Of a DNA stretch of 35,529 nt, positions 272 through 35,529 are shown piece after piece. The stretch is from Ministeria vibrans ATCC 50519 (lineage: Eukaryota; Protista; Filasterea). The notes beneath the pieces were generated by a model, which worked only from the letters and a program-made list of their open reading frames with translations, did not search any database and had not been told where the DNA came from. The first letter of the stretch is position 1, and every line of letters begins with the position of its first letter. The translations under genes were made by a program, and so were the position numbers. The stretch spans positions 1-35,529 of the forward strand of contig CALSCP010001344.1 in NCBI GenBank assembly GCA_943704425.1, written 5' to 3'.

Positions 272-710
272 CCGCTGCCGATGAAGTATAGCCAAAATAG
301 GCAATACAAAGAGCTGCGTCTGCACTTGCGTTGGAGTCAATCGCGCATGTTGCCTGGCCGCTGAGCATTGGCGTGACAGGAGCACCCATGACGACTGGAG
401 AGGAGAAGAGCGAAAAAGTGTTATAATTTCCAAAGAACACCCTCTCATCATCGAGAAGGTATGGGCACACGAGAAGGCCACACGGTCGCTTAGAAATGAG
501 TAGTATCGTGTTGAGCAGGCCGAGGGCATGGCGATAGAGAGCTGTTTCGCGCGCGAAGAAGGCAAAACCGCAAAAAGTACATGGAACGAGTTAAACGCGA
601 CACAAGAGGAACGGGCACCTCAAACAGGAGACAGGCAATTGCGTGGGTGGCTGTGCTGGTGTATCAGACACAAAGATGGGTTCGGAACAACGAGTGAGAC
701 CACAAGAGGA

Positions 711-743
<33 letters not shown>

Positions 744-982
744 GACAACGGCAAATGTCTTTGAGCGATTCGACTCGTGGAGCACGACAGGTACCACAGA
801 AGCAAGGGGGAGAGGAGAGGGGTTGCATGGAAAGAGTCGAAGGCGTACCCGAAAGACCAACGATGGTCAGAAGGACGATTCTCATTGGCAAAGGTTCCTC
901 TGTGGAATGTGAGTGCTCTGCAGAGGAGTCGCACCGTCCGACGGGTCGTCAAGAGTGCAAGAAAAGAAAAGTGACAAGTCAC
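272..982 (-). CDS. possible exons of an unidentified gene
   Basis: There is an open stretch LYRHALGLLNTILL...CIAYFGYTSSAA between an acceptor-like AAACAG (~541) and a donor-like GTACAA (~271). No domain was recognised and the structure is uncertain. Confidence 0.25.
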
Positions 983-1377
983 TGGTCACAAGTGAGGGTG
1001 GTGACTATGGTGAGAGACTGTCAGTAAAGTATGACAAAACTCAAGAAAGTTTGGATGAGAGATAGTCAGAAGATGACTCTATTAAAGAAGATGACTCTAT
1101 TAAAATACGAACCAATTTAAGATAATAAAAGGTTTACTTTCATTACAGTCATGGCTTTTTCTTCTTCAAATTTATTCAAACTTTCCCCCAGATATACAGA
1201 AAGAAACAACCAACTTTGAATGGAGCAAAAAAACAAACATCAACAAACGTTCTTTATCTATATACATTAATTGTACATTTATAAGCTCTTCACTGCTGCA
1301 TGCGCCTGAACTGCACTTTACCGTGCTCTCTTCATGCTCCTCTGTGTCATGAACACGCCGCGAAAAAAAAAATTAAC

Positions 1378-4300
1378 TTACACTTGACAAGAAAAGTCGA
1401 GGGAATGAACGGAGTGCACAATAGCACCGCTCGCAAGTGAGGCGGATGCCGAGTATGAAAGCGATCCGGCGACAGTGGGTACAAAGGAGAGCGAATGAGT
1501 GGCCGGCAGAGGAGTGGACGGGAGGAAGCAATGGACGGGAGTGCCCAGGAGTAAAGGTTGGGAGGCAGGGTCGTCGCTTGGAGGCGAGTAGATTGCGAGG
1601 GAGACTTGGACTGGCTCGTCGAGGGCTGCGCTTGACAGTGCTTGGCCCACACGGTGCAGTGTGGCCGAGATGGTAGTAGTAGATCCAAGGTGGAGACGGA
1701 AGGAGTCGTCGGATGCAGAGAGAGACAGTGTGAAACGATCGGGTGTGACAAAGTCTAGTTGTGCTCGTGAGAGGAGCCAATCGGGAGCGATAGGACACAC
1801 GCTTCCGTGGCGTCTACTCGGTTCTTTTGAGAGCCGAGACCAGTCGACGGAGATCATTTGAGCAAGACTGCGTGTGTACCAGCGAAGCGAACGCCACCAC
1901 TGTCGATCGGTGGCACTGAGAGAACGCAATTCGTCGGTGAGTACAAACTGAGTGGTGGACTCGCACGAAGGTTCGCTTGCAAGCTGATCCGAATCGAGTT
2001 CAAAGCAAGGGACACTGATGCACACCAAGTGGTGTGCAAGGGGGCCAAGTTGAAATGGAGCAGTGGCAGGGGTGGTGTGGATGTTTGGCGTGAGCTCGTA
2101 CGCGTGCTCCTTGTCCGTGCTGGTGCAAGTAAACTTGAGAAGAAAGTGAGTCCGTTGGGCGGCAGCAGAGGAGTGACTTGAAGAGTGTTCTCGCGGAGGC
2201 AGAGAGAGGGAGATGTCGGAGAAACGCAAGTGTTGACGAGTGGCAAGGGGCAACGTGAAAGAGTGCGAGCGAGTAAGAGCGGAATTGGAGCCGGAGTAGG
2301 TACACACAAGTGACGGAGACGCTGCGTCGATGAGGGGAGAGATGGGAACGGGAGCGATAATAGAGAGCGAGATGGTGTGTTGTTCCTGAGGTACGAGTGG
2401 AAGAAACGACGCCAGGTCAGGCCAGACACAGCGGTAACCGGCGGAGGATGGGGGTGAGAACGCAAGAGACTCGATGGGAGAGGCGCCTGAGTTGCTGAGG
2501 GTGACCTGAAGCGATGTGTGTTCGCCTGCGTCAAGAGTGACAGAAGCAAGAGTTGCCGAGGTGTCAATGTGAAGGAGTGGAAGGGGCTCGACGACGGTAA
2601 CACTGACGGTGGTGGGTAAGGGTAGACTGGAAAAGACGCCAAAGCGGCGTACACGGACACCACGGATGAGAAGGAGCCCGGTTCGCGTGGGCACGACATG
2701 TAACGCCAACGTGGTGCGCGTGGCGGACGCAAGCAGATGACGGAGGGGACGCGACTCGGTAAGAATGGAAGTATCGTCGTCGTCGCCGTCGAGCAGGAGC
2801 GAAATGCGATCAAGGCGCACGTCAAATTCAGTTGCATTACGCAGACCAATGTGAACGACGGCCGCCTCATGCTGGATCCAGACGGGCCCATTCTTGTCGG
2901 GTGCCGCTGATGACGACGAGAGCGACGAGAAGATGAAGGGTGACAGGGAACTGGTAAGTCCACTTGTGAGTGTAGGAGGATCACAAATAAGTTGGGGGCG
3001 CACAAAGAGAAGAGCGGGCAGCAGCACGAGGGTCTTGGTAGTGTCGGCGTACGCAGCAAAAGTGTCTAGACGCTTGGGCTTTGCAGGCAATTTCTCGTCT
3101 GTCGCGGTGGAGAGGGTATCGACGAGAGAGTCATACGGGGGACGCGTGAGAGTATCGATAGCGTTGGTAAGGAAAGTGTAGTCGCTGGCACTAAGAGCAT
3201 AGTGAAGACGCTGGAGGAGAAAGGAGAGAGCAGCAATGACGACGGGAATGTTGGCGGCATGGTGGGCAAGACCAGCAACATCACGCAGGAGCTGGGCCTG
3301 GAGAATGGGCCAGGCAAGGGGACGACGCCAACGGCCGAGGAAGCGGTCGTTCTCGAGAGTGGACGGCGACATTGACGACCAGATGCCGTCGAGAGACAGA
3401 GTGGGCAGGTGAACAGCGGGCAGGGTGTCGAGAAGGAGACGAAGGGACTGGCGGGCGGCCATAAGAGAGATGTATCGCGTTGTGGTGGACGAGGAGAGCG
3501 AGAGACGACTGTCAACAAGAATGTCATCCGAAGAATTGCTGTTGGGTGCGGAAGCAACACTGAGAGCGGAGGCATCTTGCCAGTGGAGCGTCGCTGCCAT
3601 GAAGGTGAAGAGGGCGGCCTTGCGAGCATGGTTCAGCTGACGGAAGAGGTCGCCCATGACCCGGTAAAGATGGACGCGGTCCGACGAGACAAGAGTGGTC
3701 GGGAGTGAGAGCGATGCGATGCATGAGAGAGCCTCGATAGCCTGTTCGCGGCGACCAGCGTCGATGAGGAGGCGAGTGAGACGCACACGCGCTTCGAGCT
3801 GAGCACAGCCACACGCAGTGACGTTGAGGGACTCGGCCTCGTGAAAGAGAGCGTATGCAGAGGAGTGCAAGTCAACGAGGCTGTCAATGGTAGCAGATGC
3901 GGTCGGTGCTTGGGGAGCAATGAAAGGTCGCTGATCGGGTGAGACGCGGGTGGAGAGAGCAAGCAGGGTGCCGCGGGACTCGGTGACGAGCGCCGCAGTG
4001 AGTGGGTCGTGTGCCTGACGTGCTCGGGTGGCCGCCAAGTCGTAGTGGTGCATGGCTGCCTGGGGCTGGTCTATGAGCACAGCTAGATCACCGATGCGTC
4101 GGTCAAGGCGTGCTGGAAGCAACCGGCGCAAAAGGGTCGCGGATGAGGAAGACGGAGGTGGAGGCTCGAGTGAGCGTTGCGTGTGCTGCTGCACAAGCTC
4201 GGTGTCGACGAGAAGGCCGTCTGGAAGACGTGCTGGGATTTGTCGGGCGAGAATATCACGTGCGACAATGGCAGAACGACACTGGTCGACGAGTTCGGAG

Positions 4301-4984
4301 AGGAGTGCAACGGCGACGTCGTTGAGGATGCTTGAGAGGAAGAACGCGGTGTGAGTGTCACCTTGCGAGCTCGGAACGATGGTGACGTTGGCGGCCGCAG
4401 CTCCTTCCAATCCGTCGCCTCCAACACGCTCCAACAGACTGTGTGGTGTGTCGAGTGCAAGCAGGCGTGTTGCCAACGGCCGTGGATGGAGAGCATCGGT
4501 GACGAAGCGCTCAAGCTGTTGCTGTGCGTCCTCCCAAGAACCCGACATGGAAGAGGCGTCCAGCAGGCCAATGACAGCTAGCGGGCGGCGAGCAGGGGCA
4601 ACAATGGAGACACGCGGAGTACGAAGGACTCTCGGGCGGCGTTCGGGAGGTGTGGAGGTGATGGCGGAGGCAAGCGCTGGTACGAAATGCAAATCGAGAA
4701 CGGCGCGCGTACCAAGCCGATAGGGCGCAAAGGGCGCCGGTAGCGAGTCGCAGAGGGTAGCAGGTAGCACTTGGTCGGCCAAGCGGACGCGTCGGTTCGC
4801 AGGTCGATCGATAAGACAGACATATTCGTCAAACGTTGCAAGGGCAATCTTGTCAAGGCCCACAAGTAAAACAACGATTTCTAACGGTTGGAAACAGGTG
4901 CGTGCATGTGAGCGGACGGGGCTGAGAGCGTAAGGGGGGGGGGGCGGTACCTTTGTCGCTGCCTATCTGACGAGTGAGGTCCAT
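1378..4984 (-). CDS. TRAPPC9: TRAPP II complex subunit TRAPPC9/Trs120-like
   Basis: Exons 4984-4951 (MDLTRQIGSDK) and 4880-1378, with a 70-nt GT-AG intron in frame. Trs120-like motifs: IVVLLVG..F..Y, RLDRRIGDLAVL...AMHHY...DPLTAAL, ARKAALF, WPILQ, SPFIFS, VWIQHE...LRNATEF. Confidence 0.85.
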
Positions 4985-5263
4985 CTCATGGAAGCGCGTG
5001 AGGTATCCCAAATGAACCGTGGAACAAGCGTGACTGCGTGAGGGGTGCAATGCTCTGAATTGACCAGTGGGGTGAATTCTATGATAAGCAAACAATAATA
5101 ATTAATATTGTTGCCATTCCTTCAGGTCATTCAGTTGATCAGTCAGCGGGATTGGGAACCATTCCTAATAACTAATATTATTGATTACTTGGCATTTTTG
5201 TTTGGCTTTCTTGTTTACGTCTCACTGTTGCTTTGAGCTCCTGTTTGACTTGCTCCATCCGCA

Positions 5264-6039
5264 ATGGGCTTCAAATACTACCTGTGGGACCCGTGGCTGA
5301 TCATTTCGCAGGTTTGACCGTCGGCTCTTGCGCTTTGCGCTGACACCCGCGCACTCTTAGATTGTGGCAGTGCAGACGTCGTTCTATCTGGTGTTGGGGA
5401 TGACGGTTGCTGTGGTCTCGACGCTGCTTGGCGGGGCGGTTGGACTCGACCAGCTTGTGGGCGAACGCATGATCTACCGCCACGCCAGCATTGCCTGGTC
5501 GCTGGTCGCGTGCCATGCCGTCGCATCCATTTGTGGGTACGTCTGGGGGGGGGTTATGTGTTCTTTCTGGGCTCTTTGTCGCCAGTTAGACTGCAGAGAC
5601 TGCAAAAACTTGTCATTTTTATGTTTTCATGGCACGTCAATTGACAACGTTCTCATATTAATTACATTATTATTATGATGAGCTCTCGCTTATTTTCTTC
5701 CTTTTTTTTCTTATTATGATGTTTAGAGCAATGACGCTGTTTTTGATTGTTGGGCGTGCCAAGCAATGTTTGGACTTCTCCGTGACGGCCCAGGTGATTC
5801 ACTTGCTCCTGAGCTGTCTCTACACCGGCTTTCCCACATCATGGCTATGGTGGGTGCTCTCCGTGACGGACGCCGTCATCATGACCGTCCTTGGCGAGAC
5901 CCTTTGCATGCGTCTTGACTTGTCGGACATTCCCTTGCTGTCTACCTCACTGGGCGCATCGTCTTCCTCCTCCTCCTCCTCCTCGTCTTCCGCTGCTCCA
6001 ACCGCATCGTCAACATCGCCCTCCACTGCAACCTCCTGA
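5264..6039 (+). CDS. SYS1: SYS1 Golgi integral membrane trafficking protein
   Basis: Exons 5264-5311, 5361-5536 and 5727-6039. Motifs WDPWLIISQIVAVQ, IVGRAKQCLDF, FPTSWLWW and LGETLCMRLDLSDIPL match the Sys1 family. Confidence 0.92.
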
Positions 6040-6143
6040 TCATGAGTGACTTTCCTTGTACCGTAATAATAATTATGATTGCTATATCTTTGCTTTGCTT
6101 TGTAAACATAAAAATATACGTCTTGATATTGAATTTTAATGTG

Positions 6144-6507
6144 TTACATGCGCCAAATGCGGAGGAGTTTGTCCTTACTGCCACTGACGACAGACTCGCC
6201 ATTAGGGCTCCAGTCAACCGTGTACACCTGAAACAGTGAGTGAGTGACAAAGAGTCATTGTGCGTGAGTGAGTGAGTGAGTAAGTGACAGTGATAACAAG
6301 TATGTGAGCGGGAGTGGATATTGGTGCGTCAACGAGTGAGCAAATGAGTGCATTATGTGGATTCGAATATATGTGTGTGCGTGTTCTGACCTCATCTGCG
6401 TGTCCTGGCAGATTGTTCTTGAGCGCCTTGTGCTTGACATCCCACACTTTCATTGTACTATCTTTGCTTCCAGACACCAACAGTCGCGAATCAGCTGACC
6501 AGCACAC
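6144..6507 (-). CDS. NLE1: Notchless/Rsa4 WD40 protein, last two exons only (5' part missing)
   Basis: Exons 6507-6391 and 6227-6144 read VCWSADSRLLVSGSKDSTMKVWD...LPGHADEV|YTVDWSPNGESVVSGSKDKLLRIWRM*, the characteristic NLE1 C-terminus. Confidence 0.85.
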
Positions 6508-6559
6508 CTGTTAATATCAGGTGTCAGTACATTTCACCTCTCAAATTGTTATTGTTTTG

Positions 6560-6808
<249 letters not shown>

Positions 6809-6822
6809 CATCTTTTTTGTAG

Positions 6823-7533
6823 GTCCATGCGTGGACGTGGATCTTCCATCTGTGCGTCTGGGGCAGCATTGTGTCGACTTTTGTCTACATTCTCTTCTAT
6901 CAGTCCATTTTTCCGTCGAGCAACTCCACGTATGGTGCGTGGCGTGAGATCTTCCCTGAGGGTGTCTTCTGGCTGTCAGTTCTTCTGAGCGTCGTCACTG
7001 CACTGCTCCCTTTCTACGTGATGCGTCTATGGTCGGCCGTACGCCACCCAGACACGTCTCAGCTCATCCGAGAGATGGTCAAGACGCAACAGCCGCCCTT
7101 CGACGCGCCACACGGCAATGGCCAGACCACGCCCCACTCACGCGTTACAGGCGGCACACACGGCGGTCACCCGACCCTCCATGCCATGGCCGAGCCTCCC
7201 TCGTCCCCTTCGTCTGACACGCGCGACTCCACTCACCACGGCTATGCGTTTGCCCACTCGCGCGGCTGGGGTCGTCTCATCTTGCGTGGACTCGGCCTCC
7301 ACCGTAGCGGCGGGGGCCAACGCCGTCGCTCCAGCACGCACCAGCAACACTTGGGGGACGAGTCAACGGCCGCCAACCCGCTCGGTCAGCTTTCGTCGCA
7401 CACGCCCGCCACGACCGTCGAGGCCGAGCTTAAGACCATTACCATGGACAATCTAAGCAAGGCGACGCAGATTGAGGTTGAGGAGGAGGTCCCCATCAAT
7501 CCACTTGTGCCCTCCATCGTCACAGCAATGTAA
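6823..7533 (+). CDS. P4-ATPase phospholipid flippase (ATP8/Drs2-like), terminal exon only
   Basis: After the acceptor TGTAG (6822) the frame reads VHAWTWIFHLCVWGSI...FWLSVLLSVVTALLP, the final TM helices. The tail motif GYAFAHSRGWGRLI resembles the ATP8 autoinhibitory GYAFS motif. Confidence 0.85.
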   Translation, partial: VHAWTWIFHLCVWGSIVSTFVYILFYQSIFPSSNSTYGAWREIFPEGVFWLSVLLSVVTALLPFYVMRLWSAVRHPDTSQLIREMVKTQQPPFDAPHGNGQTTPHSRVTGGTHGGHPTLHAMAEPPSSPSSDTRDSTHHGYAFAHSRGWGRLILRGLGLHRSGGGQRRRSSTHQQHLGDESTAANPLGQLSSHTPATTVEAELKTITMDNLSKATQIEVEEEVPINPLVPSIVTAM

Positions 7534-7537
7534 CAAC

Positions 7538-7907
7538 GAAATTATTTCTTCTTTTGGTTCTGATTGTAACATTGTGCATTATAAACGAGTACTGCTACTG
7601 GCTGGCCTTGTAATCGTCCTCCTGCTGGCTCTTGAAGTTGTTCTCGTTGTAGTCTGCGCCTCTGAGGAAATTATTTCTCTGATGTTAACATTGAGCATTA
7701 TAAACGAGTACTGCTCTTGGCATCGGCCTCCTGCTGGCTCTTGAAGTGGTTCTCGTTGTAGTCTGCACCCCTGAGGAAATTATTTCTTCTATTGGTTCTG
7801 ATTGTAACATTGTGCATTATAAACGAGTACTGCTACTGGCTGGCCTTGGCATCGGCCTCCTGCTGGCTCTTGAAGTTGTTCTCGTTGTAGTCTGCGCCCC
7901 TGAGGAA
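7538..7907. repeat. three tandem imperfect copies (~130/110/130 bp) of the LIM gene 3' end
   Basis: The unit gaaattatttc...cattataaacgagtactgct...gctcttgaag.gttctcgttgtagtctgc..ctgaggaa starts at 7538, 7667 and 7777. Confidence 0.92.
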
Positions 7908-9023
7908 CGCCTGCGTGTAGTGGGGCTTACAGTAGAAGTCGGTGCCAAGACTAGCAAACTCGGCGAGCTTAAGCACCGCCTGGCAAGTGGTACAGCGGAA
8001 GCACGTCTTGTGGTACGGCGTGCCGTTGGCGACCACCTGCTCCTGCGGATACGCTGTCTTGGAGCACTTTCCGCACTTGTTCGACTGGAACATTTGAGTA
8101 GCATCTGCTTTAGGCGCCTGAAAATGAGTCGGTGAGGAGAGTATACAGTGAGAAATATTGTGACAGAATCACGCATACAAGTGGTACCTTTTTTCCGCCC
8201 TTTTTCACTCTGGGACCAGTGCACAGCTTGATTTCCTTTCGTGTGTAGTTCTCAATTGATGAATCGTCAATTTCCGTCTTGAGCAGTTTCACAATTGTGT
8301 CATCATTAAATCCTAAAAGAGAATGTGACAAACGCGAAACAGCGAAACACGCGACAAACAATCAACAATCAAACACACATTTCACACAAATTATAATAAT
8401 AAAAAACGTATCACTTCACATTTGCAAAGCCCATTACGTACTCTGCATCAGCAAATGGCCCTCATAGACTACCACTTTGTGCTTCTTCGCCGTAATCAGA
8501 GTGCCTGACAGCGCCTCCATAATATCCTCCGTCTCCTTGAACAGCTCTCCAAACGCAATCTCATAGTGTCCTTCGCTTCCTTCCACCCGCTTCCCTTTCT
8601 CCACAATCACCCCAATCAGCTTGCGGATTTCCTGGTCCACCCACTTTGCAGCTGCGCGCGCCCGCTCGTCTGCCTTGGACAGCGGCTGGTCGTCGTTGAG
8701 TCCTTCGTCGTCTGACAGCGTAAACTCCCTTTGCACCGTCTCGCTTGTCTTCTTGCTGCCCTCTTCTGCCGCCTTTCGTTTCCTCTCTGCTTCCTCTTCC
8801 CCCTCTTTTGTTGCCTTCTCTTTCGCCCGCTTTGCCTCTTCTTCCTTAGCCATCTTCTTCTTCTTCGCCTCTTCTTCTTCAGCCATCTTCTTCTTCTTCG
8901 CCTCCGCCTCCGCCTTTCGCTTCTTCTCTTCCTCTGCACGCTTTCGCGCTGCCGCCTCCTCCTCGGCCTTCATCATCTTCTTCTTCCTCTCTTCTTCTTT
9001 TTCTTCTTCTTCCGCCTTTCGCT

Positions 9024-10000: not shown

Positions 10001-11038
10001 ATGTCTATTGCCGCTGCAGCGACTTCTGCCGCTGCGTCGGCGTCGCGAGCGGCCGTTTCGGCGGGACTCCGTTTTATCGACACGCACTCTCACCCCAACC
10101 GCTGCTCACACGCACCCCGGTACGCCGAGGCGAGTGATGCTACTCTGAGGGCTGTGGCGTTGCGTGGTCTGGTCCCCGCCGAATCCCAGCTTGACGCCTA
10201 CATTGCGGTCTTTTGCGAGGCGGAGAGTGTCGTCGAGTCGAGCAACGCAATGCACTACAGCCACTACCACAGCGACCGCATGTTCTTCACTGTCGGCTGC
10301 CACCCCCACACAGCCTCAACCTACGACGCCGCGTATGAAGAAGCCATTCGCCAGGGTAAGATATGCTGTTTGTTATGCAATCTGTCGACTGCTCTGTTAT
10401 GAAACCTGTTATGAAACCTGTTGACTGACCTGCGACGCTCTTGAAGCCGCACAGCACCCTCGATGCGTGGCCATTGGTGAGGCAGGTTTGGATTACTTCA
10501 GAGATAACTCACCGCGCGACGTAAGTTGGGAGTTGTGTCGCAGAGTTTGTGCACTCACTTTGCCACTATAATGCAGGTGCAACTTAGCGTCTTTGAGCGC
10601 CAAATTGAATTGGCAGTGGAACTTTGCAAGCCTCTGGTGATCCATTCACGAGACGCCGATGATGATATGCTGAATGTGATGCGTCGATGTTTGCCCTCTG
10701 ATCACCTCATTCACCTGCACTGTTTCACATCGCAATCTGCTGACTTTGCCGCCGCACTTCTCCGCGAGTTTCCCCGACTGAAAATTGGATTTACCGGTCT
10801 CATCACGTACAAAAGCGCACGTGGTGTGCAAGACATTGTTCGCAACACCATTCCACTTGAGAGACTGCTCAGCGAGACGGATGCTCCCTACATGACCCCT
10901 GAGCCGCTCAGGAAGGTGCGCGCCGACTCCGGGCACGTCGCACTCGTCGCCAGTCGCATTGCAGTGCTCAAGGGCGTCCCTCTCGCCGCTGCAGTCCGTG
11001 TGCTGCGTGACAATGCACGTGAAATCTATGGAATTTGA
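10001..11038 (+). CDS. TatD-family deoxyribonuclease
   Basis: Exons 10001-10355, 10447-10520 and 10577-11038. Motifs FIDTHSH, VGCHPH, AIGEAGLDY, PLVIHSR, HLHCF and LSETDAPY are present. Confidence 0.93.
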
Positions 11039-11144
11039 GAAAATTCAAACATACACTGACGGCTTGGAGGCACAAAAGAATTTGGACAGTCCAAGTATGA
11101 AATGTTGTAGACAGTCAAAAAATAAAACAATATATTTCATCTCT

Positions 11145-14100
11145 CTAACAATCTGAAGAAGAGGCGACTCCGTTGCTTCGTCGGTACAGAAAAATGTCTC
11201 CGTCATTGACCATTCCCGCCGTCCAGTCCCTCCAAATACGCCCCACCAGCGCAGCCTGCAGTGCGTTGGTCGGGTCCAGCATTCGCAGTCGCCGTCGCAG
11301 CTCAACCGCACTCACATACGCCTCATCCTCGTCAAACACCTTTCCTTTGCCCAGTGCGAGAATGAGTAGCTCAGTCAGGCGCGTCACACCCCCACTCGTA
11401 AAGCTGCTGGCGTCGCGCAGTGCGCTCGTAATGGCCTGGCGTGCGTACCCTCGAACGGGCCCAGTGCGCTCGGCCATGGTCAGGTCCTCCTCTGGCACAA
11501 TCAATGCTCCGCTGTTGCAAAAGTCGCAGAACACCAACACGTTGCCACCCAGCCAGCCCACGTCGTCGCGGAGAATCGCGGAAAGGCTCAACAAACTTAG
11601 GCGTGTCAGTGAACCACCAACAGTCTCACGAGCGTCACTCAACAGCAGACCACCCCCACTGTCCTCGGCACCATGCCCAATCAGATGCACAATCAACAGC
11701 GAGTCCTGTCCCGCACCCACTCCCGCCTTCGTCGCCAACCGTGTCGTCGCATCCACAACCAGACTCCTCCTCACTGCGTCACCCTTCTTCCAGTCCACCA
11801 CCGTCTCCACATCACATCCTCGATCGCCCCACATCTTCGCCAGCTGACGAACACTCTTCTGCACCTCAGGAAGATCGTCAAAGTCCTTCAGCGCAGCATT
11901 GCCCGACGACGCATACCGACTCACTCCCACGATCAACACTGACGCATGCGAGTAGATCCCCATTGCTACACCAACAAGAACGTATCAAAAACAATCACAA
12001 TCATGTCAAACTACAAATACTAATGAATCGTACCTTCTTGCTTGCACCACCACCTCTTCAGCTTCAAATTGCACATCCGCTTCTGTCCATCAAAGCGTTT
12101 CAGCTCCGCATTCACAACCTCCGCATCGCGATAGTCTTCGGGCCGCTCAGCGACACTCTTCGGCGCAAACAGCGGATGCAATGGATGCGTCTCGCCCACT
12201 GCCAGTGCAAACGGATGCGCAGGCACCACCACAGCACGCCCGCGCCAGCCCCATCGCAGAGACCGCGTCGACTCACACACAGTCTCAACCAGTCGAGTCC
12301 ACGTCCGCTCGCACTTGATCGCCTTCTCTCCCAGCATCTCCAGTCGAATGAACGACTCGTTGCTATTGAGGCGCAGTCGCACAGACTCACACCCGTCCAT
12401 CGTCAGCGCATTCGTGCATCGTTGCGTCGCTTCAATGTGAATGTCAAGTGGACACGCCCGCCATAGGGCCACCACAACCAGATGGAAGGTGGCCAGTGAC
12501 ACTGGAAGCTCCTCCCACTTGCCATTATCCGCATTGTGCGTCATCTGGTACAGGAACAGCACTGCGGGCGCTGGTGGTGCGTTCGCCACAAAGGGCGCAC
12601 TCTCAGGCAGCAGCATCGGGATGAAAAGGTGGTCATGATGCGCATGCACCAGACTGAGGTGCTCCAGACACGCCATGAATGCTGACACGTCCGTCACATC
12701 TGCACCTGCCAGCACAGGGTCGCCGCTGCTCTTTGTCTTGGCCGCCGTCCACACCAGCCACTCCGCCACCTCCCGACAGAATCCCGCCTCGGACCGTGTT
12801 TTTGACTCGTCCAGAGACACAAGCAGGCGCTCGGTGCGCTTCACGTCGACCGAACGACCCGCCTGCGTCACCTTCGTCAGCATTTCCTTGGCACGCGCAC
12901 TCCCCGCTCGTTCCCACCGTGCCATCACCACCGAACACAGCAGTTCCACCGCCGAGATCAGCCGCGGAATGTCAAACACAATTGTGTCCTTCTCGTCCAG
13001 CGACTGCGCCGTCGCATCTTGGCGGCACACCACAATGTCCGCCGCAGACTCAAGGTACGGCACAAGTTCGGCCCGCACCTTTGCCCCGTCCGGCATAAGA
13101 TCAGTCAACATGACGGGTGGCTCAGTGCTCAGCTGGAGCGTGTCAAGGTGTTCGACAGAGGAGAGCAGTGGAATCTCGTTCAGTCGGGCGGCACGACCAA
13201 GCAGGTCCTGTGCACACACATACTCCATCGGCAGCGTGCGTCGTCGCGGTGCGACGTGCAGTGCCTGTGTGAGTGCGCTGAAGCCCACCTTCTTGCTGCT
13301 GCCCACCTGGAAGAACGGCAGAGCAGAGTCGGCAGGCTGCATCAAGTGATCGCCCAACTGCAACCCAACGAGATGAAACACTTGGTCGGAGACGGCCGCC
13401 AGCAGGTCGACGGGAACTGTGTTGTTGGGGAATGTGTCAACGTGAGTGCCCACAATGAGCACACGGAAGTATGAGTCGTCGGTCGAGGGCACTTGGTGCG
13501 CAATAATGTGGGCCCACTTGGACAGGTGCTCGTACTGTCGCTGTGCCTTGACTGGATCGTCCATGACAGACAGGTCAAATACAAGCAGGTAGGCCGACTC
13601 GGAGCCCATGAAGAGCGCAGGAAGCGAGTCAAACATCTCTTCACCTAACAATAACAGCATCAATAGGAGTGGAAGACAGTGTTCTTTGTCGTCTGCGCTA
13701 TACCGGCAAAGTCAAATGTTTCAAGGTCAATGTGGCCCTCGCGCAGTTCAGACTCGAGAAGCGTGTGCACGGCCAACATGGTGACTGAACTGGGCGTGGG
13801 GGCGGCCGGTGGCGGGGTGGATGGGCACGGAGAGGATGGTGATGATGAGGGAGAAGTGGTCGTCGAGATGGAGTGGTGCGTTGGACTGCCTGCTTGAGCG
13901 GCAGGCTGTGATGTCTGCTGTGCAGTCGTGGTGGTGGTGGTTGTCGTAGTGGTTGTCGATGGTGTGGTCTGCTGCTCGTCCTCCTCCGCCTTGCGCCCTC
14001 CAATGAGACTGGCCAGGCGGTGTTCCTCTTGCGGCACTGCCTCAAACACGCCTGTCGCCCCATCCAGCACCATTCGCACTCGCTCCAGTCGAGTGGCCAC

Positions 14101-15916
14101 TGACCGATCTGCCTCCGTTGGCAGTGTCTGTCCGCGCAGTGCACACAGCAGGGCCGTTTTGCCCGCCAGCACTGCCCCCAGACACAACAGTTTGATCGTG
14201 CGTGGTTCTACTGATCCTCGCTCAATGGCCGCCTCAAATGCCCTCTGGTACACGCTGGGAATCAAGAAAAGAACGGCATGTTAAAAACGAGAGAGATGTA
14301 TTCGTCTGTTGTAGCACTCACGTTTTGACAAACTGCGCAATGGACCATCGGTGGACTGTCTTGTCTGCACAGTGGACAATCAGTGTGTTCCCATCCGACG
14401 AGAACTCAATTGTGTCCACTCTAAACAAACACGCAAAAGCGAGTGAGTGAGTAAGTGATGAAAGGAATTGAACACACAAACCTGGAAGGAACTGCAAATT
14501 GTGTGCGAATGGTTCCTTCGAATCGGGTCCACACTTTGATTGTTCTGTCACTTGATCCACTGTAGATGGTGGTTCCGTCTCGAGACACAGCGACTGAGCA
14601 AACATAACTAAAAAGCAGAAACAAGCACATATTAGACAGGTCTTCTCTGCACAATTCAACTCACTCCGTGTGTTCCTTCAATGTCCGTTCGCACTCTCCC
14701 GTCAGCACATTCCACACTTTCACCGTCTTGTCAGATGAGCCACTGATGACATGGCGTCCGTCAAAGGAAAACACTGCTGACCGGACAAGACTGCAAACGA
14801 AGAATATAAGAGACCAAACCACACGGAATAGTGATTGAGTGACTTACGAAGAGTGTCCACTGAGTGTCTTGAGACACTTTCCACTCACAACAGACCATAT
14901 TTTGATTGTTTTGTCCCATGACCCACTGAGCACTGTTTGTCTATCAAATGAGAATGCCACGCACAGCACATCTCTGTAAACCACAAAACAATCAATACAT
15001 CAGAAGAAATTACACTCTTTCTCGATTTGAATTACTTTGAATGTCCCTGGAACGTGATTTCACACTTTCCCGTTTGACTGTCCCACAGTTTCATTGTGTG
15101 GTCGGATGAGCCACTCAGTATTTTCGTTCCGTCCGGTGAAAATCTCACTCCTCGTACAACACTGAAATGCATAAGAATGAACATCAACACAAATCAGAAT
15201 CACTCTTACTCTGTGTGGTCTTTCAGAATGAGCAGACACTCTCCCGATTGACTGTCCCACACTCGAACTGTATCGTCACCACTTCCACTGACCAATTTGA
15301 GTCCATTGGGTGAGAAATCAACAGACCAGACAACACTACACAAATGAATATTAGACACAGTGACACTCAGTGGGATATCACTCTCTCTTTCTCTAACTTT
15401 GTGTGACCAGTGAGAGTGAGAGTGCACTTTCCACTGTGCATTTCCCACACTCTGACTGACCCGTCCTCTGATCCAGTGACCACTCGCAGTCCATCGGGAG
15501 ACACTCTCACACTCGACACAGGACTAAAAGAAACCCAAAGATGGTCAGACACCAATCTCCATTGTGTTCATGGTAATTGAAAATGAAATGTCCAATTTGT
15601 GCACAACACAACGCACAGAAAGAACGGGTATTCTTATTCGTCTCGTTTCAACTTACCGTTCGTGCATGAGTGTTCTGACACACTTTTTGTCTTTCACAGA
15701 CCACACTTTGGCTGTGCTGTCGCGTGATGCACTCACAACCCACTGCTCGTCTGGAGACAGCGTAACTTCATAAATGACACCAGAGTGACCAGTGAGAGTG
15801 ACCACTCCACAGTCAACCTGTTCCCCTCCTTTGCCGTCCACTTCCACCAGCGCAACATGTGATCCTTTGTCAACAGCGACCAGTGAGTCGTCAACAGAGT
15901 GGCGAATAGCGGACAT
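11145..15916 (-). CDS. WD40 - Roc GTPase - COR-like - caspase-family (C14) protease fusion, Roco-type, about 1365 aa
   Basis: Exons 15916-15657, 15523-15398, 15335-15210, 15161-15036, 14973-14848, 14790-14665, 14607-14482, 14420-14322, 14254-13704, 13644-12034 and 11965-11145. All introns are GT-AG and the exons total 4098 nt in one frame. Roc motifs: G1 GAVLAGKT, G3 DFAG|[11 protein letters not shown]4 IVGTHVD. COR-like motif: LFIPMLLP. Protease motifs: HLIGHG and VFCDFCNSG. The start codon is the least certain part. Confidence 0.85.
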
Positions 15917-16023
15917 TCAGTTCTGAAAGAGAAACCCCATTTGTTGAGTGATCATAGAACAGTTGAGCACGACACCCTCCCGGTCCAACCAATACTGCAC
16001 CGCTCTTCCACACCCCCACTCTC

Positions 16024-16475
16024 TCCCACTCTCTACAGCGACAAGAAGAAGAGTGTTCTGTTTTGGCCATATTTTATCCACTGAATGACAAACAAACCAA
16101 AACTAATAATAACAAACACACTCTCACCCATGTCCCACCACCAATACACACACTGTAGCCCAACCATGCCATATGGGCTGTCCCTCACCACAATATCGTC
16201 TTCTAGAATTAATTCCAGTTCGACTCGACCGAAAACTACATTCGGCCTACCGCCCAACACACACACACAATGCGATCCCACGGCGCCCCAGCAGCCCCCG
16301 CACCCCCCACGGCACCCCCCTGCCCCGTGCCGCACACCAATAGCAAGCCGTGTGGCTCTCTGTCGACTCCTTCAAAATTTTAAGGGCTCACCCACACACA
16401 AAACACAGACAAAAACGCACAAGAACACACGTCGACAATGCCAGCCCACCCACAAACACCTACCAGTTGCTAGTG
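16024..16475. repeat. dispersed ~450-bp repeat, copy A (inverted copy at 35090-35529)
   Basis: 16024-16236 is nearly identical to the reverse complement of 35313-35529. The outer half shares blocks such as gtcga.tccttcaaa.ttt and aacacctacc. Confidence 0.9.
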
Positions 16476-19401: not shown

Positions 19402-22308
19402 ATGTCACAGGGTGAGGCAGAGCGGCTGGGTGCGGTGGTGAACAAGCGGCCGCCGCACGGACCCGACTTGGGAGTGTTTCTGCGGCCACAGCTCAAAACG
19501 ATGCCTGCGCAGTGGAGCAACGCCGAATACTGCCTGCGCGCCGACCAGCTCAAGACGTGGTCGGAGCCATGGCTGTCGGCGGCTGTGTCGCGCGCCCCCG
19601 TGCTCATGGCGGCGCTGGATGCGCTCCACACGTCCATTGCGCGTCTGCAGTTTATCTCCAACAGCGTCTTCAAGGGCCCCCTGCCCAACGACCTTGTCGA
19701 GGTGGGCACTGGGGCAGACGCCAAGGCCAAGCGCGTCCTTGTCACCGCCGGCGACACCGTTCTCGCTCTCTTTGCGCATCTGGGTCGAATCGACGTTATG
19801 ACTGAGCTGCTCGAACGAATCCGCCTTGAAAAGGACCCTCACAAGCCGGAAACACAGCGCGCGTACGAGGCGGAGGAGCTGCAGACGAAGCTGCGCGACG
19901 AGTACTGTCGTCACGAGCTGCTGCGCATCGGTGCTGAGCGCGGCGAGGTTGTCTCCTGGGACGACAAGGCACGACTGCCCGCCGTCAAGCGCCTGCACGA
20001 GGAACGCGAGCGAATGCTCAAGGCGTCGCAGTCGCTCGATCCCGTAAACAAGGCCAACGACGAGGGTATTACGCCACTTGAGATTGCCATCGCAAATGGT
20101 CACTGGGCTCTCATGAAGCTGCTGGTGCAGCACGACGCCATTATTACGCCGCGCGCTTTTAGTCTCATTGCCGCACACAAATCCCCCGAACCCATCTCAT
20201 TCCTGGAGCAACAGCCCGGCACTCCGCACGACTTGGCGGCACCCATTGCGTGCCTTGACCATGAGGTCACGGCGCTTCATCTGGCCTGTCGCGATGCGCC
20301 CCTTCAAACATTCATTGACATTCTCAACTATGCCATGGAACGCGCACGCACTAAAGACCTCGCGCCGCTCTTCACCGTTGTCGACGATGCTGGCGAGACC
20401 CCCTGGGACTACGCTGCGTCGGCCGGGCGGCTTGACCTGTTGCGCCACATGGTCGAAGACCGTGGTATCTCCCTCAAAAACACGTCGCACCTCTTCCACT
20501 ACGCCTGTCGCGATGCCGCCGCCCTGCCCCATATCAAGGAGCTTCTTACATTTCTCTATGAGCAGCAAGTGGGTGTGTATACCACGGACCGCGCCGGCAA
20601 GACTGCCTTGCACTACTTGGCCGCCAGCGACGCACATTTGCCGCTGCTCACCTGGCTGTTCGAGATGCTGTGTCCGCCTTCCGTCGATATCGCGACGCAG
20701 GCGGGCGTCACGTTGTTGCATACAGCGTGCACAGCAGGCGCCCACGAGACGGCTTTGTACTTGCTGCAGCACGGTGCCGATGCGCATTGTGTGAGCGAGA
20801 TTGAGCGACTGGCGTCTATTCATTATGCCGCCCGCGGTGGCTGTGTACCGATCGTGACCGCGCTGGTCAACGACTACGACTGCAACCCGCTTCTTGCCTT
20901 CCCGCCTCACATGCGCTCGCCCGTGCACTATGCAGCCGAGGCAGCCCACGTCGATGTGGTCAGCGAGCTCTTTCGGTTAGTCACACACCAGTTTGCGGAC
21001 GAGAACGAGGAGGCAGTGCTCGACACTCTGCGCAACGATACCTCACCGCCCTCGACGACGCCCACCTATGACTCGAGCGTGCCGTACGATGCAGAAACGG
21101 ATAGAATGGAGCGCCTCGTCAACAAAAAACGGCTGCTTGAACGACAGATTGCGCTGCACGGCGGACGCAGACACTATGCCCTTTTGGTAGGTCTGCATCT
21201 CGCGTGCAAGCCCGACGGTGCTCGTCCCCTCCACTTGGCCGTGCGTGCTGCCGCCGACCGTGTTGTCGAGTGTCTTCTCGAGCTGGGCGCCGCCGCACAG
21301 GGTCCACTGGCCAAGGTGCTCTCGCGCAACACCACTCCGCTACTCGAGGCGTGTCAACTTTCGCCGTCCAAGCAGGGGGCATTGCGCACCGCAATCGTGC
21401 TTCTCGACCATTGCGGTGCAGGCTGTGTCAACGAGCCCATGGGCCCCGACAGACGCACCCCGCTCTGGCTGGCCGCGAGCGTTGGTCACGCGGCGCTTGT
21501 TGAAGAGCTGCTGGTGCGACGCCAGGCCAAGCCCGAACAGTGCGACCGCGGTGGTAAAACGCCCTTGATGGCAGCCATCTTTCATGCGCCGCGTGAGCTT
21601 GTGTGCGACACCGTGCGCACCCTGTTGAACCACGGTGCCAGTGCCGTGACGCCTACCAAACAGCCACCCTTGACGCCCCTTGCTGCCGCCGCCAAGCTTG
21701 CACATCCCGAGCTCGTGCGTCTTTTGCTTGACCATGCCGCTGCGCACAACCTCCCTGACTTGCTTAACACCTCCTGTCATCGTGGCTGCACTCCGCTACA
21801 CCTGGCCATTTTCGACCCGGACGAAGAGATGCCGCGCCTCGAGCGCTTTCGCAAACCCGGCTTTGACGAGGATGCGCTCGAGCGAGACCATCGCGATCGC
21901 GAGCTGTGCGTGCGCTATTTGCTTGAGGCAGGCGCCGAGCCCAACACGGTCGACGATGTTCACGGCGGGTCCGCACTGCAGCTCGCCATGATCCACGGTG
22001 GTGGCTCGCTCGTCGAGACTTTCTGTCGGCGAGCACAAGGGCTCACGCGCACTCATGTCTTGCACGTGCTTCAGCGCGTCGAGCAACTGGCTTCGCGCTA
22101 CGACCCGCTCCCAAGCGCACAGGCACAGGCCATTGCGCGCGCCGCCTGCGACAGCCGTCGACGCACCTGTGGCGCCTGCCGCCTTTTTGATGCCAGCAAC
22201 ACCATGCTCCTCTGTGCCAATTGTGATCGCGAGAAATACTGCGACCAGGTCTGTCAGCGCGCTGATTGGAAGAGTCACAAGCCTGTTTGTAATAAGAAAA
22301 AGAAATGA
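19402..22308 (+). CDS. ankyrin-repeat protein with C-terminal MYND zinc finger
   Basis: Single 968-aa ORF with many GxTPL/TALH ankyrin starts. The C-terminus CGAC...CANCDREKYCDQVCQRADWKSHKPVC fits the MYND pattern. Confidence 0.9.
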   Translation: MSQGEAERLGAVVNKRPPHGPDLGVFLRPQLKTMPAQWSNAEYCLRADQLKTWSEPWLSAAVSRAPVLMAALDALHTSIARLQFISNSVFKGPLPNDLVEVGTGADAKAKRVLVTAGDTVLALFAHLGRIDVMTELLERIRLEKDPHKPETQRAYEAEELQTKLRDEYCRHELLRIGAERGEVVSWDDKARLPAVKRLHEERERMLKASQSLDPVNKANDEGITPLEIAIANGHWALMKLLVQHDAIITPRAFSLIAAHKSPEPISFLEQQPGTPHDLAAPIACLDHEVTALHLACRDAPLQTFIDILNYAMERARTKDLAPLFTVVDDAGETPWDYAASAGRLDLLRHMVEDRGISLKNTSHLFHYACRDAAALPHIKELLTFLYEQQVGVYTTDRAGKTALHYLAASDAHLPLLTWLFEMLCPPSVDIATQAGVTLLHTACTAGAHETALYLLQHGADAHCVSEIERLASIHYAARGGCVPIVTALVNDYDCNPLLAFPPHMRSPVHYAAEAAHVDVVSELFRLVTHQFADENEEAVLDTLRNDTSPPSTTPTYDSSVPYDAETDRMERLVNKKRLLERQIALHGGRRHYALLVGLHLACKPDGARPLHLAVRAAADRVVECLLELGAAAQGPLAKVLSRNTTPLLEACQLSPSKQGALRTAIVLLDHCGAGCVNEPMGPDRRTPLWLAASVGHAALVEELLVRRQAKPEQCDRGGKTPLMAAIFHAPRELVCDTVRTLLNHGASAVTPTKQPPLTPLAAAAKLAHPELVRLLLDHAAAHNLPDLLNTSCHRGCTPLHLAIFDPDEEMPRLERFRKPGFDEDALERDHRDRELCVRYLLEAGAEPNTVDDVHGGSALQLAMIHGGGSLVETFCRRAQGLTRTHVLHVLQRVEQLASRYDPLPSAQAQAIARAACDSRRRTCGACRLFDASNTMLLCANCDREKYCDQVCQRADWKSHKPVCNKKKK

Positions 22309-26301: not shown

Positions 26302-28912
26302 ATGATCAAACGATCCACATGGCAATCTCGGGCCACCGGTACGACAGTAAAGCGACACAATCGCTTGTAATTGTTCGGTTTTCCTTCGGTTTCTTTCAGA
26401 GGTTGAAAACGACGAGAACGACAGCCGAACCAAGCCGATAGCGCCGTCCCAACGGGCCGTACGTGTTGCTGTCCGCATCCGGCCTCCGTTTGAATCAGAA
26501 TTGGCAACGGTACAAATCGGTTCATTTTTGAATTTTGTACTTATGAATCTGACGCTCTACAGGGCACTTACGAGGATGTCGTGCACGTGTCACCCAACCA
26601 GAGGTAAGACAAAGCACCAAGGATGGATTTCCTGCCGCGAATGTGTCCTCTTGGGCTGTACATTGGTCAGCGGTTTTCATTTGGGGTTTGACAATTATTG
26701 AGTTGGTTTAAAGGGACTTTCAAGTGATCTTTCATTGAGACAAGTTAAAATGATTGCGACTGAGTGCTCTCTCATCCATCCCCACTGTAGAAAGGTTGTC
26801 GTCTCGTACGCGGACCACAGCGAAGAGTTTGCGTTTGATCAAAACTTTGGCCCGGAGACGACACAGGAGGAGGTGTACAACGACATTGCCGCTCCCTTGG
26901 TCGAGCAGGTTCTCAACGGCCGCAGCTGCACCGTCATGGCATATGGCCAAACAGGCACAGGAAAGGTGAGAGAAATAAGTGAAAAACCGTCGTCTACTCT
27001 TCCGTTAAAAGCAAAGTGTGGAACCTGGGGGTGTAGACACACACAATGGGCCTTCTGACACGTCTCGCGCCCGACCCGTCTCCTGCCGATGGAATTGTGT
27101 CGCGTGCCCTCCACCACATCTTTCGATCTCGTCGTACTACTACTGCACCTCAGCGCGTAGCGCTCACCTTCACTCAGCTGTACTGTGATCAGCTGTTCAA
27201 TCTGCTTAATCCCAACTGTACCGGTTCGCTGGTGATTCGTGAAGATCCAAAAAGAGGGTTTTACATTGACGGATTGGGTACGAAGAGAGTGATGATATTG
27301 ATATAGATGAATTTAAATTCATTCACAACGCACCACCATTATAGTTATGACACAATTTTGTTCACGCAAGTACTCAATTGACACGCATTTTTACACTTTT
27401 ACCCACTTCTAGTCACACACCTTAAGATGAAAAAATAGACTCAAAACTTACTATCATACGACACAATTTTGTTCACACAAATACTCAATTGACCTCCAAC
27501 ATACTCCGACACACATTTTTACACTTATACTCACTTTCAGGCACACATTTAAAAAAACTTTTTTTTACCCCTTTGCAGAAGAACAAGAAGTTGGAAGTGT
27601 GGCGGAAGCGATTGAAGTGGTCAACTATGGCCTGGAACAACGGTACATGGCGAGCACACGACGGAACGTGACGAGCAGTCGAAGTCACTGCACATTGACT
27701 GTGACGGTGTTTGAAGGGGACGCGGATATGGGGCGGAAGTTGACGCTGATTGATTTGGCCGGGAGCGAGCGTGTGGCGGTGTCGCGCAGCAGTGGAGTGC
27801 GGTTGGACGAGGCCAAGGCGATTAATAAGAGTCTGTCGTTCCTGGGGAATGTGGTGCGGGCATTGGCACAAGGAAAGACGGGCGGCAGCAGCGAGTCGAC
27901 GTACGTGAGCTATCGGAGCAGTAAGCTGACGACGTTGCTGCACGAGACGCTTGCAGGTGGTGCTGGAGTGGGACTGGTTGCCACTGTGGACATGGGTCGG
28001 AGCAACCGCAGCGAGACACTGTCGACGTTGGCGTTTGCACGACGATGTATGGCGGTGCAGGTGCAGTATACAATTGGAAAGGGACAGGGAAGGAGGAAGA
28101 AGAGGACAGGGGAGGAAGGAGGGGAGGAGGGGGATGGGGAGGAGGAGTGGGAGCGCAGGATGGCCGAGCAGGCGCAGGTGCATGCTGTGCGCGAGCAAAA
28201 GCTGGTGGAATTTTATGAGCAGACAATTCAGGAGATGGAAGAGCGACTTAAGAGCGCACAGGAAAGACGAAGAGAAGAAGAGGAGGAAAGAGAAGAAGCG
28301 GGCATGAGCGCGTCAGTGGCGCAGTATAAGGCGGATGAGGAGAGGATTGCGCGTGAAATGAGCAGCGCGCCCCTCAATGTGCCCACGACTGTCACGACAA
28401 GCACACCAAGACCCGTCATGGCCTACACGTACAAACTACTGGCGGATCTCCGGACGCGCACTCTGGCGCCCATTGAGACGAGTCTTGCACGCGAACAGTC
28501 GCTCTGTGCGGCCCATGGCATTGCACCGGTGCTCGACGCGCAGTCCCTGCCCACCGACGCAGTCCTTCCGCCTCTCGACACCCTTGACACGGACGCATCG
28601 TTGCTATCGGCACTCCGTACTGCACACGGCCACGTGGCTGCCAACACCCACTTGATTGCGCGCGTGTGGGAACGCAAAGACGCACGCATTGCGTCTCTGG
28701 CTCAGGCTCTCAGCGATCTTCAACAACAACAACAAGAGTCCTCGTCGCCCGCCGTGGTCGCCGTCGCCCGCACCTCGCCCTGGCCTCAAGGTGTGCCCCA
28801 GCAACCGCTTGAGTGCACCACTTTGTCCTCACGTGTGGCGGCGGCTTCCATGTCAGGTGTGTCCGCGCGCGACCGAGTTCGGATGCTTCTTGACGAGTCC
28901 TCAGCAGTGTGA
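26302..28912 (+). CDS. N-terminal-motor kinesin (subfamily unassigned)
   Basis: Spliced motifs VRVAVRIRP, FAFD, AYGQTGTGK|THTMG, SSRSH, LIDLAGSE, INKSL, YRSSKLT and ETLSTLAFA, followed by coiled coil. The start is uncertain (26302 or 26319). Confidence 0.92.
27349..27530. repeat. imperfect ~110-bp tandem duplication in kinesin intron 27278-27578
   Basis: gacacaattttgttcac.caa.tactcaattgac...catttttacactt occurs twice, at ~27349 and ~27460. Confidence 0.75.
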
Positions 28913-35089: not shown

Positions 35090-35529
35090 GTCTGTACTAC
35101 CAGGTAGGTGTTGGGGTGCGCTAGGAACGACGATACAGCGCGTTTCGTTGTGTTTGGGAGAACCTTCAAAAATTTGAAGGAATCGACTCGTTTGCGTACT
35201 ATGCGCCTTTGGCCCATCGCATGGAGCAGGGGTGTGTGTGTTTGTTGGAGCAAGGTGGCAGTGTGCTTTGGTGTCGAATTTGTGTTGTGTGTTGAGTTGT
35301 ACGGACGAAAGTGTTTTCGGTCGAGTCGAACTGGAATTAATTCTAGAAGACGATATTGTGGTGAGGGACAGCCCATATGGCATGGTTGGGTTACAGTGTG
35401 GGTGTCTGTTGGTGGTGGGGCATGGGTGAGAGTGTGTTTGTTATTATTAGTTTTGGTTTGTTTGTCATTCAGTGGATAAAATATGGCCAAAACAGAACAC
35501 TCTTCTTCTTGTCGCTGTAGAGAGTGGGA
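35090..35529. repeat. dispersed repeat, copy B (inverted relative to 16024-16475; runs off window end)
   Basis: 35313-35529 is nearly identical to the reverse complement of 16024-16236. Confidence 0.9.

Follow-up and report, generated by a model that had tools for sequence, protein, structure and literature searches.

Intracellular receptors for immunity and cell death among animals, plants and fungi have STAND ATPases at their core, and Roco GTPases, with their Roc-COR tandem, have been suspected of a role parallel to that of STAND receptors. To our knowledge, direct fusions of a Roco switch to an effector have so far been described only as computational predictions in bacteria. Namely, bacterial proteins that combine leucine-rich repeats (LRR), an AP-GTPase (Roc) and COR carry at least 24 different C-terminal effectors, a caspase among them, and have been read, from computational analysis, as counter-invader systems (Kaur, Iyer, Burroughs and Aravind 2021, PMC8195603). 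In eukaryotes, the placozoan Trichoplax has at least 17 genes for ROCO proteins, whose adaptor domains are of the CARD, death and TIR types (PMC4104024), and brown algae have LRR-ROCO candidate immune receptors in which each LRR is encoded by one 72-nucleotide phase-2 exon (PMC11378527); a review of Roco proteins mentions no protease fusion (PMC6337361). Here we analyse a gene on the minus strand of a 35,529-nucleotide stretch of Ministeria vibrans ATCC 50519 DNA (assembly GCA_943704425.1, contig CALSCP010001344.1, positions 1 to 35,529; the whole stretch is called the window below), whose predicted product joins a WD40 propeller, a Roc GTPase, a COR domain and a caspase-fold protease in a single chain. 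At least 33 genes of this kind, the present one included, make up a lineage-specific repertoire, and the family is a eukaryotic, WD40-sensing variant of a design so far only predicted in bacteria. A literature search found no paper on a WD40-Roc-COR-protease design in a eukaryote, and the paper describing aggregation of Ministeria vibrans (PMC13366479) makes no mention of the family. A preliminary description of the locus had suggested, tentatively, that no such architecture is known from a eukaryote; this agrees with our search as far as eukaryotes are concerned, although the design itself was already known as a bacterial prediction (PMC8195603).

Read base by base, the gene runs from an ATG at 15916, directly preceded by an in-frame TGA, to 11145, and consists of 11 exons and ten introns of 48 to 133 nucleotides, all of which start with GT and end with AG. 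The coding sequence of 4098 nucleotides (1365 codons with the stop) stays open across all 11 exons. The preliminary description had proposed that open reading frame fragments join through canonical GT-AG introns into one frame, and this is what we find; the three introns that it had placed (14321-14255, 13703-13645 and 12033-11966), the residues at their junctions, and its coordinates for the catalytic His (11675-11673) and Cys (11519-11517) are all exact. Searches and fold predictions were carried out with single exons or contiguous loci, and splice junctions were joined and translated locally, only across short flanks. The layout, with exon borders taken from sequence reading, is as follows.

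11145 to 15916, minus strand: whole coding region, 11 exons and ten GT-AG introns (base-by-base reading and open reading frame pieces).
14322 to 15916, minus strand: WD40 propeller, exons 1 to 8 (Pfam WD40 on seven exon pieces).
15916 to 15657, minus strand: exon 1.
15523 to 15398, minus strand: exon 2.
15335 to 15210, minus strand: exon 3.
15161 to 15036, minus strand: exon 4.
14973 to 14848, minus strand: exon 5.
14790 to 14665, minus strand: exon 6.
14607 to 14482, minus strand: exon 7.
14420 to 14322, minus strand: exon 8, 99 nucleotides.
14254 to 13704, minus strand: exon 9, which encodes the N-terminal half of Roc, comprising strand 1, P-loop, switch I, strands 2 and 3 and DFAG (motif conservation).
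14155 to 14178, minus strand: P-loop GAVLAGKT, motif G1 (sequence reading and paralogue alignment).
13774 to 13992, minus strand: Thr/Ser/Pro-rich low-complexity insert in Roc between strands 2 and 3 (paralogue alignment).
13713 to 13704 and 13644 to 13643, minus strand: DFAG, split by an intron (sequence reading).
13644 to 12034, minus strand: exon 10.
13250 to 13644, minus strand: first part of exon 10, C-terminal half of Roc with switch II EEMF (profile matches).
13450 to 13436, minus strand: GTHVD, motif G4 (sequence reading).
12034 to 13249, minus strand: remainder of exon 10, COR domain, COR-A and COR-B (fold; boundary with Roc approximate).
11966 to 12033, minus strand: intron 10, between COR and protease, 68 nucleotides, phase 1.
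11965 to 11145, minus strand: exon 11, caspase-fold (clan CD, C14-like) protease and stop (paralogue Pfam matches, profile and fold).
11673 to 11675, minus strand: catalytic His97 (exon numbering) in LIGHG, invariant in 21 paralogues and aligned with SGHG of metacaspase-4.
11517 to 11519, minus strand: catalytic Cys149 in CDFCNSG, invariant in 21 paralogues and aligned with DSCHSG of metacaspase-4.
15917 to 16423, minus strand: upstream segment that was copied along with the gene (blastn between the window and L016, the copy on contig C916).

The sensor part of the gene is strikingly regular. Each of exons 1 to 7 encodes one WD40 unit above the Pfam threshold (E 2e-7 to 2e-11), and exons 2 to 7 are exactly 126 nucleotides long and of phase 2, with one blade per exon. 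The preliminary description had counted about eight repeats; seven reach the Pfam threshold, whereas the eighth, encoded by exon 8, is a degenerate last blade.

The switch that follows can be assigned by its motifs and by its fold. The Roc motifs G1, G3 and G4 are present in the window gene and kept in 12 to 15 paralogues; in particular, GxxxxGK[TS] and DFAG are kept in 15 paralogues, with G26, A30, G31 and K32 (alignment numbering) invariant. Pfam Roc remained below threshold on the pieces from the window. A profile built on exon 10 found LRRK2 Roc chains as its sole matches in the PDB, weakly (E 0.085 to 0.65), with switch II and GTHLD aligned, and, among 1.84 billion representative proteins, it found nine, of which four are fragments of the same family and the remaining five all have Pfam Roc, at E from 5e-11 to 2e-25, and in two cases COR-A as well. 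The Roc GTPase of the preliminary description is therefore upheld, with P-loop, DFAG and GTHVD all in place and a profile that is specific to LRRK2 Roc and to proteins with Pfam Roc. The structural comparison reaches further. Namely, an AlphaFold2 model of exon 10 (predicted local distance difference test, pLDDT, of 80) was compared with solved structures by Foldseek, and the best 31 matches all belong to LRRK1, LRRK2, the Roco protein of C. tepidum (CtRoco) or Roco2 of M. barkeri (MbRoco2), over alignments of 345 to 549 columns, bar one partial match of 211 columns. The isolated COR domain 3dpt_B is among these matches (6e-5). The region formerly called COR-like can be called COR, by fold and not by sequence. 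By fold and motifs, the window gene belongs to the Roco family, and its Roc-COR region would be expected to bind GTP. The Thr/Ser/Pro-rich insert is disordered. Each paralogue has an insert of different length and sequence, and insertions and deletions separate it even from that of the 97% identical copy on contig C916.

As to the protease, the C14 identity of exon 11 rests on its paralogues, its profile and its fold. Peptidase_C14 (PF00656) is matched by 15 of 21 paralogous exons at E of 0.1 or below, with a best E of 2e-10, and one paralogue reaches 21.8 bits against a cut-off of 21.4. The family profile of the exon matches Arabidopsis metacaspase-4 with GHG and D-x-C-x-S-G aligned, and the AlphaFold2 model (pLDDT 81.5, predicted template modelling score 0.87) finds by Foldseek, at a probability of 1.00, the orthocaspase-like GSU0716, MALT1, yeast metacaspases (Yca1) and caspase-9; the neighbours of the protease in the ESM Atlas are bacterial C14 clusters. 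What is more, none of 21 paralogues, which are 31-67% identical, departs from His97, Asp147 or Cys149. By its caspase-hemoglobinase fold and by a His-Cys dyad that comes after strands 3 and 4, the protease is a member of clan CD/C14. The preliminary description had named a C14-type protease with this His and this Cys, and dyad, fold and paralogue Pfam matches all speak for it, although the window exon itself falls below every Pfam threshold. The QACxG active site of animal caspases (C14A), which have a basic S1 pocket that accepts Asp, was not found in the domain, where the motif is CDFCNSG, and Asp147 sits two residues before Cys149, as in metacaspases and orthocaspases, which this protease resembles rather than an animal caspase. 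The earlier appeal to initiator caspases activated by proximity is only an analogy; a complex prediction for two copies of the protease domain, at a score of 0.00, speaks neither for nor against dimerisation. The domain is presumably proteolytic. The S1 pockets of metacaspases prefer a basic P1 residue (Arg or Lys), and by analogy this suggests the same preference as the likelier one here.

Is the fusion of COR and protease peculiar to this one gene? Searches of the same assembly gave about 60 matches for the protease exon and about 69 for the Roc-COR exon, and at a minimum of 33 loci a COR exon lies directly upstream of a protease exon on the same strand, across a gap of about 60 to 460 nucleotides, mostly about 100. 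All 22 COR-protease junctions that were examined have a phase-1 GT-AG intron of 48-84 nucleotides which links the two frames with no stop in between. Among the paralogues, these introns have drifted apart freely in sequence while the codons on either side are kept, and the intron at DFAG is likewise kept. Just 4 of the 22 junctions have a Met after the acceptor and before the conserved Tyr, and therefore the protease exon is not generally a separate gene. Judging from these junctions, the predicted core fusion (Roc, COR and protease, leaving WD40 aside) is a family trait. The N-terminal regions appear to vary across the family; several members gave no WD40 match by tblastn.

Some loci of the family deserve a separate comment. 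The paralogue L011 (contig C2822), with an open frame of 1075 codons, was considered as intronless proof of the fusion and rejected, since an 84-nucleotide and an approximately 60-nucleotide in-frame intron are read through by chance. Namely, some introns of the family are multiples of three without stops (in L011 at about 5739-5822 and near 4130, in L027 at about 3012-3100), so that exons fuse into long open frames which mimic intronless genes. P0010, considered as a spliced product, was similarly rejected as intron read-through on a metagenome contig. In the divergent homologue P0018 (L040, an environmental metagenome contig), an upstream region and the protease share one open reading frame, and just nine residues separate the WW motif from the conserved Tyr, which leaves no room for an intron; the similarity of this upstream region to COR-B is weak (hhalign E 0.064) and a hint at most. 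Members 45-97% identical to the window protease exon occur on the metagenome scaffolds L038, L039 and L040 (ENA ERZ23497041, ERZ23497376 and ERZ23497388; SCHR19-1 METAG), and the organism or close relatives of it were therefore in those samples. A search for homologous proteins with L011, whole or protease region, gave no match (for the whole sequence, the search words probably came from low-complexity stretches), and a sequence search of the PDB with single window exons gave nothing useful. Upstream of several paralogues there are further long frames. In L011 (G000:C2822:46000-54000), a 950-codon frame (582-3434, plus strand) ends about 15-50 nucleotides before the Roc-COR-protease paralogue and matches NB-ARC (E 2e-8) and DUF7779, with a weak second Roc-like match; it may be part of a single gene combining a STAND ATPase, Roc-COR and protease, or a tandem neighbour. 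A 606-codon frame upstream of the paralogue in L025 (G000:C1441:51930-60703; 4005-5822, minus strand) matches Peptidase_C14 (E 3e-5), L022 has a similar caspase-like start upstream of its own protease exon, and in L036 (G000:C894:82249-91019; 4864-8769, minus strand) the frame upstream of the paralogue has 1302 codons and contains DUF3638 and DUF3645.

The youngest duplicate of the window gene is its copy on contig C916. The gene and about 500 nucleotides upstream of it (11141-16423) are duplicated there at 97% identity over 5.3 kb, with unrelated sequence on both flanks, which makes the copy a young paralogue rather than an allele. The differences between the two are distributed very unevenly. 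Six of the ten introns (1, 4, 5, 6, 8 and 9) show none at all, and introns 1 to 8 together have 3 mismatches in 547 nucleotides, as compared with 41 mismatches in 630 nucleotides of blade exons 3 to 7 (Fisher P = 9e-9). Over blade exons 2 to 7 there are 24 replacement and 6 silent codons, which gives a ratio of nonsynonymous to synonymous substitution rates (dN/dS) of 1.31, as against 7 replacement and 8 silent codons and a dN/dS of 0.29 in exon 10 with its Roc-COR region. Within the repeat, replacements recur at codon 1 (five of six blades), codon 3 (three) and codon 19 (five). In the scheme of Wu et al. 2012 (PMC3419727), who defined the hotspot positions of the WD40 top face, these codons are R1-2, R1 and D-1, respectively, and these 3 of 41 positions hold 13 of the 24 replacements (binomial P = 2e-9). 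For this pair of paralogues, the pattern suggests diversifying pressure on those residues of the sensor that contact the ligand, as is seen in immune receptors. The duplicated upstream sequence (15917-16423) is likely the 5' untranslated region and promoter. Two smaller elements also connect the two contigs: about 250 nucleotides at the end of the window (35280-35529) match, on the opposite strand and at 93.7%, a region upstream of the C916 copy, and 110 nucleotides at 16314-16423 are found twice near that copy. Either could be a dispersed repeat of short length, or else an element associated with promoters.

What could such a protein be doing? The present analysis shows how the gene is built, what its four domains are, that the catalytic and GTPase motifs are conserved, how large the family is, that the fusion is kept, and that replacements are in excess at contact positions. 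From here, we consider it probable, with moderate confidence, that the protein is a sensor-switch-effector intracellular receptor, with non-self or danger molecules as the most likely ligands and defence or regulated cell death as the likely outcome; the family size, the variable N-termini and the diversification of hotspots are our reasons for placing it there. In such a receptor, the WD40 propeller's top face would bind a variable ligand, be it a molecule of a pathogen, a virus or a foreign conspecific, and binding would be relayed to the Roc-COR tandem acting as a nucleotide-dependent conformational and oligomerisation switch. In LRRK2 and in bacterial Roco proteins, Roc-COR couples the nucleotide state to dimerisation via COR-B. 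The changed state of the switch would then free, or bring together, the C-terminal metacaspase-like domain, which would cleave itself or downstream substrates. Expression of the window copy, coupling of the domains and the biological role are what we infer here. The preliminary description had already proposed a sensor-switch-effector module, and the family expansion and the concentration of replacements at the propeller contact positions strengthen that proposal, although its appeal to animal-caspase activation was an analogy only and the gene has turned out not to be singular. A bolder version, which we put forward tentatively and on which we would not rely, is that Ministeria vibrans, a unicellular relative of animals, has dozens of NLR- or apoptosome-like receptors switched by Roc-COR, with hypervariable WD40 surfaces and a built-in metacaspase-like executioner, which sense pathogens or foreign conspecifics and respond with proteolysis or death. 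If true, this would be a working eukaryotic example of the bacterial Roco conflict systems from which, it has been proposed, animals drew immune and apoptotic modules.

That said, several points weigh against the receptor reading. Known Roco proteins act also in trafficking, the cytoskeleton and development, and an immune role therefore does not follow from the fold. Pfam COR-A and COR-B find no match on the window exons, which leaves the COR domain unrecognised by sequence, and exon 11 itself obtains from Pfam just a sub-threshold CHAT match (17.8 bits, cut-off 24). The splicing of the window gene we infer from its sequence and from conservation among paralogues. Moreover, the dN/dS values come from a single paralogue pair, the window gene and its C916 copy, and the silent changes of this pair are themselves uneven, with 16 in the 272 codons of the protease exon and 8 in the 536 codons of exon 10; such raised silent change in the protease exon suggests a mosaic history of the pair, and gene conversion may contribute to the differences between the blades.

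The alternative that survives best, and which we rate as unlikely though still a serious contender, is that the protein is a GTPase-regulated processing protease or a scaffold in ordinary signalling, trafficking or development, as are many Rocos of Dictyostelium, and has no part in immunity or death. Roco proteins do have varied non-immune functions (PMC6337361), metacaspases frequently have roles other than death, and the neighbours of the gene in the window (TRAPPC9, a P4-ATPase fragment, a kinesin and an ankyrin-MYND protein) belong to housekeeping. However, no fewer than 33 paralogues with the same core, together with a dN/dS above 1 that is focused on contact positions, would be unusual for a housekeeping regulator. 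We think it improbable that the protease domain has lost catalysis and serves for recruitment or as a decoy, with an output that runs through partners and not through proteolysis. Pseudo-orthocaspases do exist (PMC6426788), and the poor score of the window copy against Pfam C14 would fit one, but the invariance of His97, Cys149 and Asp147 in 21 paralogues as different as 31-67% identity, and their alignment with the catalytic residues of metacaspase-4, point the other way. Finally, a mis-joined model, in which the protease exon is a separate gene (it happens to start with Met in the window) or the window copy is an unexpressed pseudogene, is very improbable in view of a frame that is open through 11 exons, a COR-protease gap of just 68 nucleotides, a phase-1 intron kept in 22 of 22 paralogues (18 of them without Met at the exon start) and the purifying selection on Roc-COR (dN/dS 0.29).

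The surroundings of the gene are ordinary. TRAPPC9 lies at 1378-4863 (minus strand), a TatD-like hydrolase, identified from its translation only, at 10526-11038 (plus strand), an ankyrin-repeat protein with a MYND finger at 19402-22308 (plus strand) and a kinesin motor exon at 27599-28912 (plus strand), and a P4-ATPase fragment is also among the housekeeping neighbours. Within the 35,529 nucleotides of the window, there is no cluster of members of the WD40-Roc-COR-protease family.

With dozens of intact copies and a protease output in a culturable protist, whether a Roc-COR switch, through its nucleotide state or through a bound ligand, controls a fused protease becomes a testable question, one that bears on the mechanism of LRRK-type Roc-COR modules and, if the genome is that of the aggregating filasterean, on self/non-self control near the origin of animals. 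How, then, does the family compare with what has been described? Closest in design are the bacterial AP-GTPase-COR proteins (PMC8195603), which share the single chain with fast-evolving N-terminal repeats, Roc, COR and C-terminal effector as well as the many paralogues per genome. Here, however, a WD40 propeller takes the place of LRR as the sensor, the genes belong to a eukaryote and have introns, and all core-bearing members that were examined carry the same protease effector, whereas effectors differ from paralogue to paralogue in bacteria. Similarity to bacterial Roco proteins beyond the Roc half is too low for HMMER; the named ESM Atlas cluster nearest to a paralogue is a cyanobacterial COR-A/COR-B/CHAT one, which at a score of 0.84, below the 0.9 mark, is a lead only. 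To LRRK1, LRRK2 and the C. tepidum Roco protein the window gene is tied by its Roc-COR fold (Foldseek probability 1.00) and by the LRRK2-like motifs DFAGxE.F and GTHxD, and WD40 is found in LRRK proteins too; unlike them, it has no kinase, its WD40 part is N-terminal rather than C-terminal, its output is a protease and its Roc carries a large disordered insert.

Among eukaryotic systems with links to immunity or apoptosis, the ROCO proteins of Trichoplax (PMC4104024) likewise form an expanded family, in a lineage near the root of animals, that joins Roc-COR to modules of apoptosis or immunity, but their adaptor domains would recruit a protease, whereas in Ministeria vibrans the protease itself is fused. 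The LRR-ROCO proteins of brown algae also are an expanded family with each sensor repeat on its own symmetric phase-2 exon (72 nucleotides there, 126 here), an arrangement read as a route to receptor diversity; their sensors, however, are LRR, and no effector domain follows COR. In its overall logic (WD40 as sensor, an NTPase as switch, a death effector as output), the window gene is like the bacterial metacaspase-NACHT-WD40 proteins, Apaf-1 and the fungal HET-E/NWD NLRs (PMC3501461, PMC4986451). In those systems, however, the switch is a STAND ATPase, while no exon of the window gene has a Pfam match to NB-ARC or NACHT, and the order of the domains is reversed relative to the bacterial proteins. 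In other words, the window gene is an analogue of the STAND, NLR and Apaf-1 receptors and not a member of their family.

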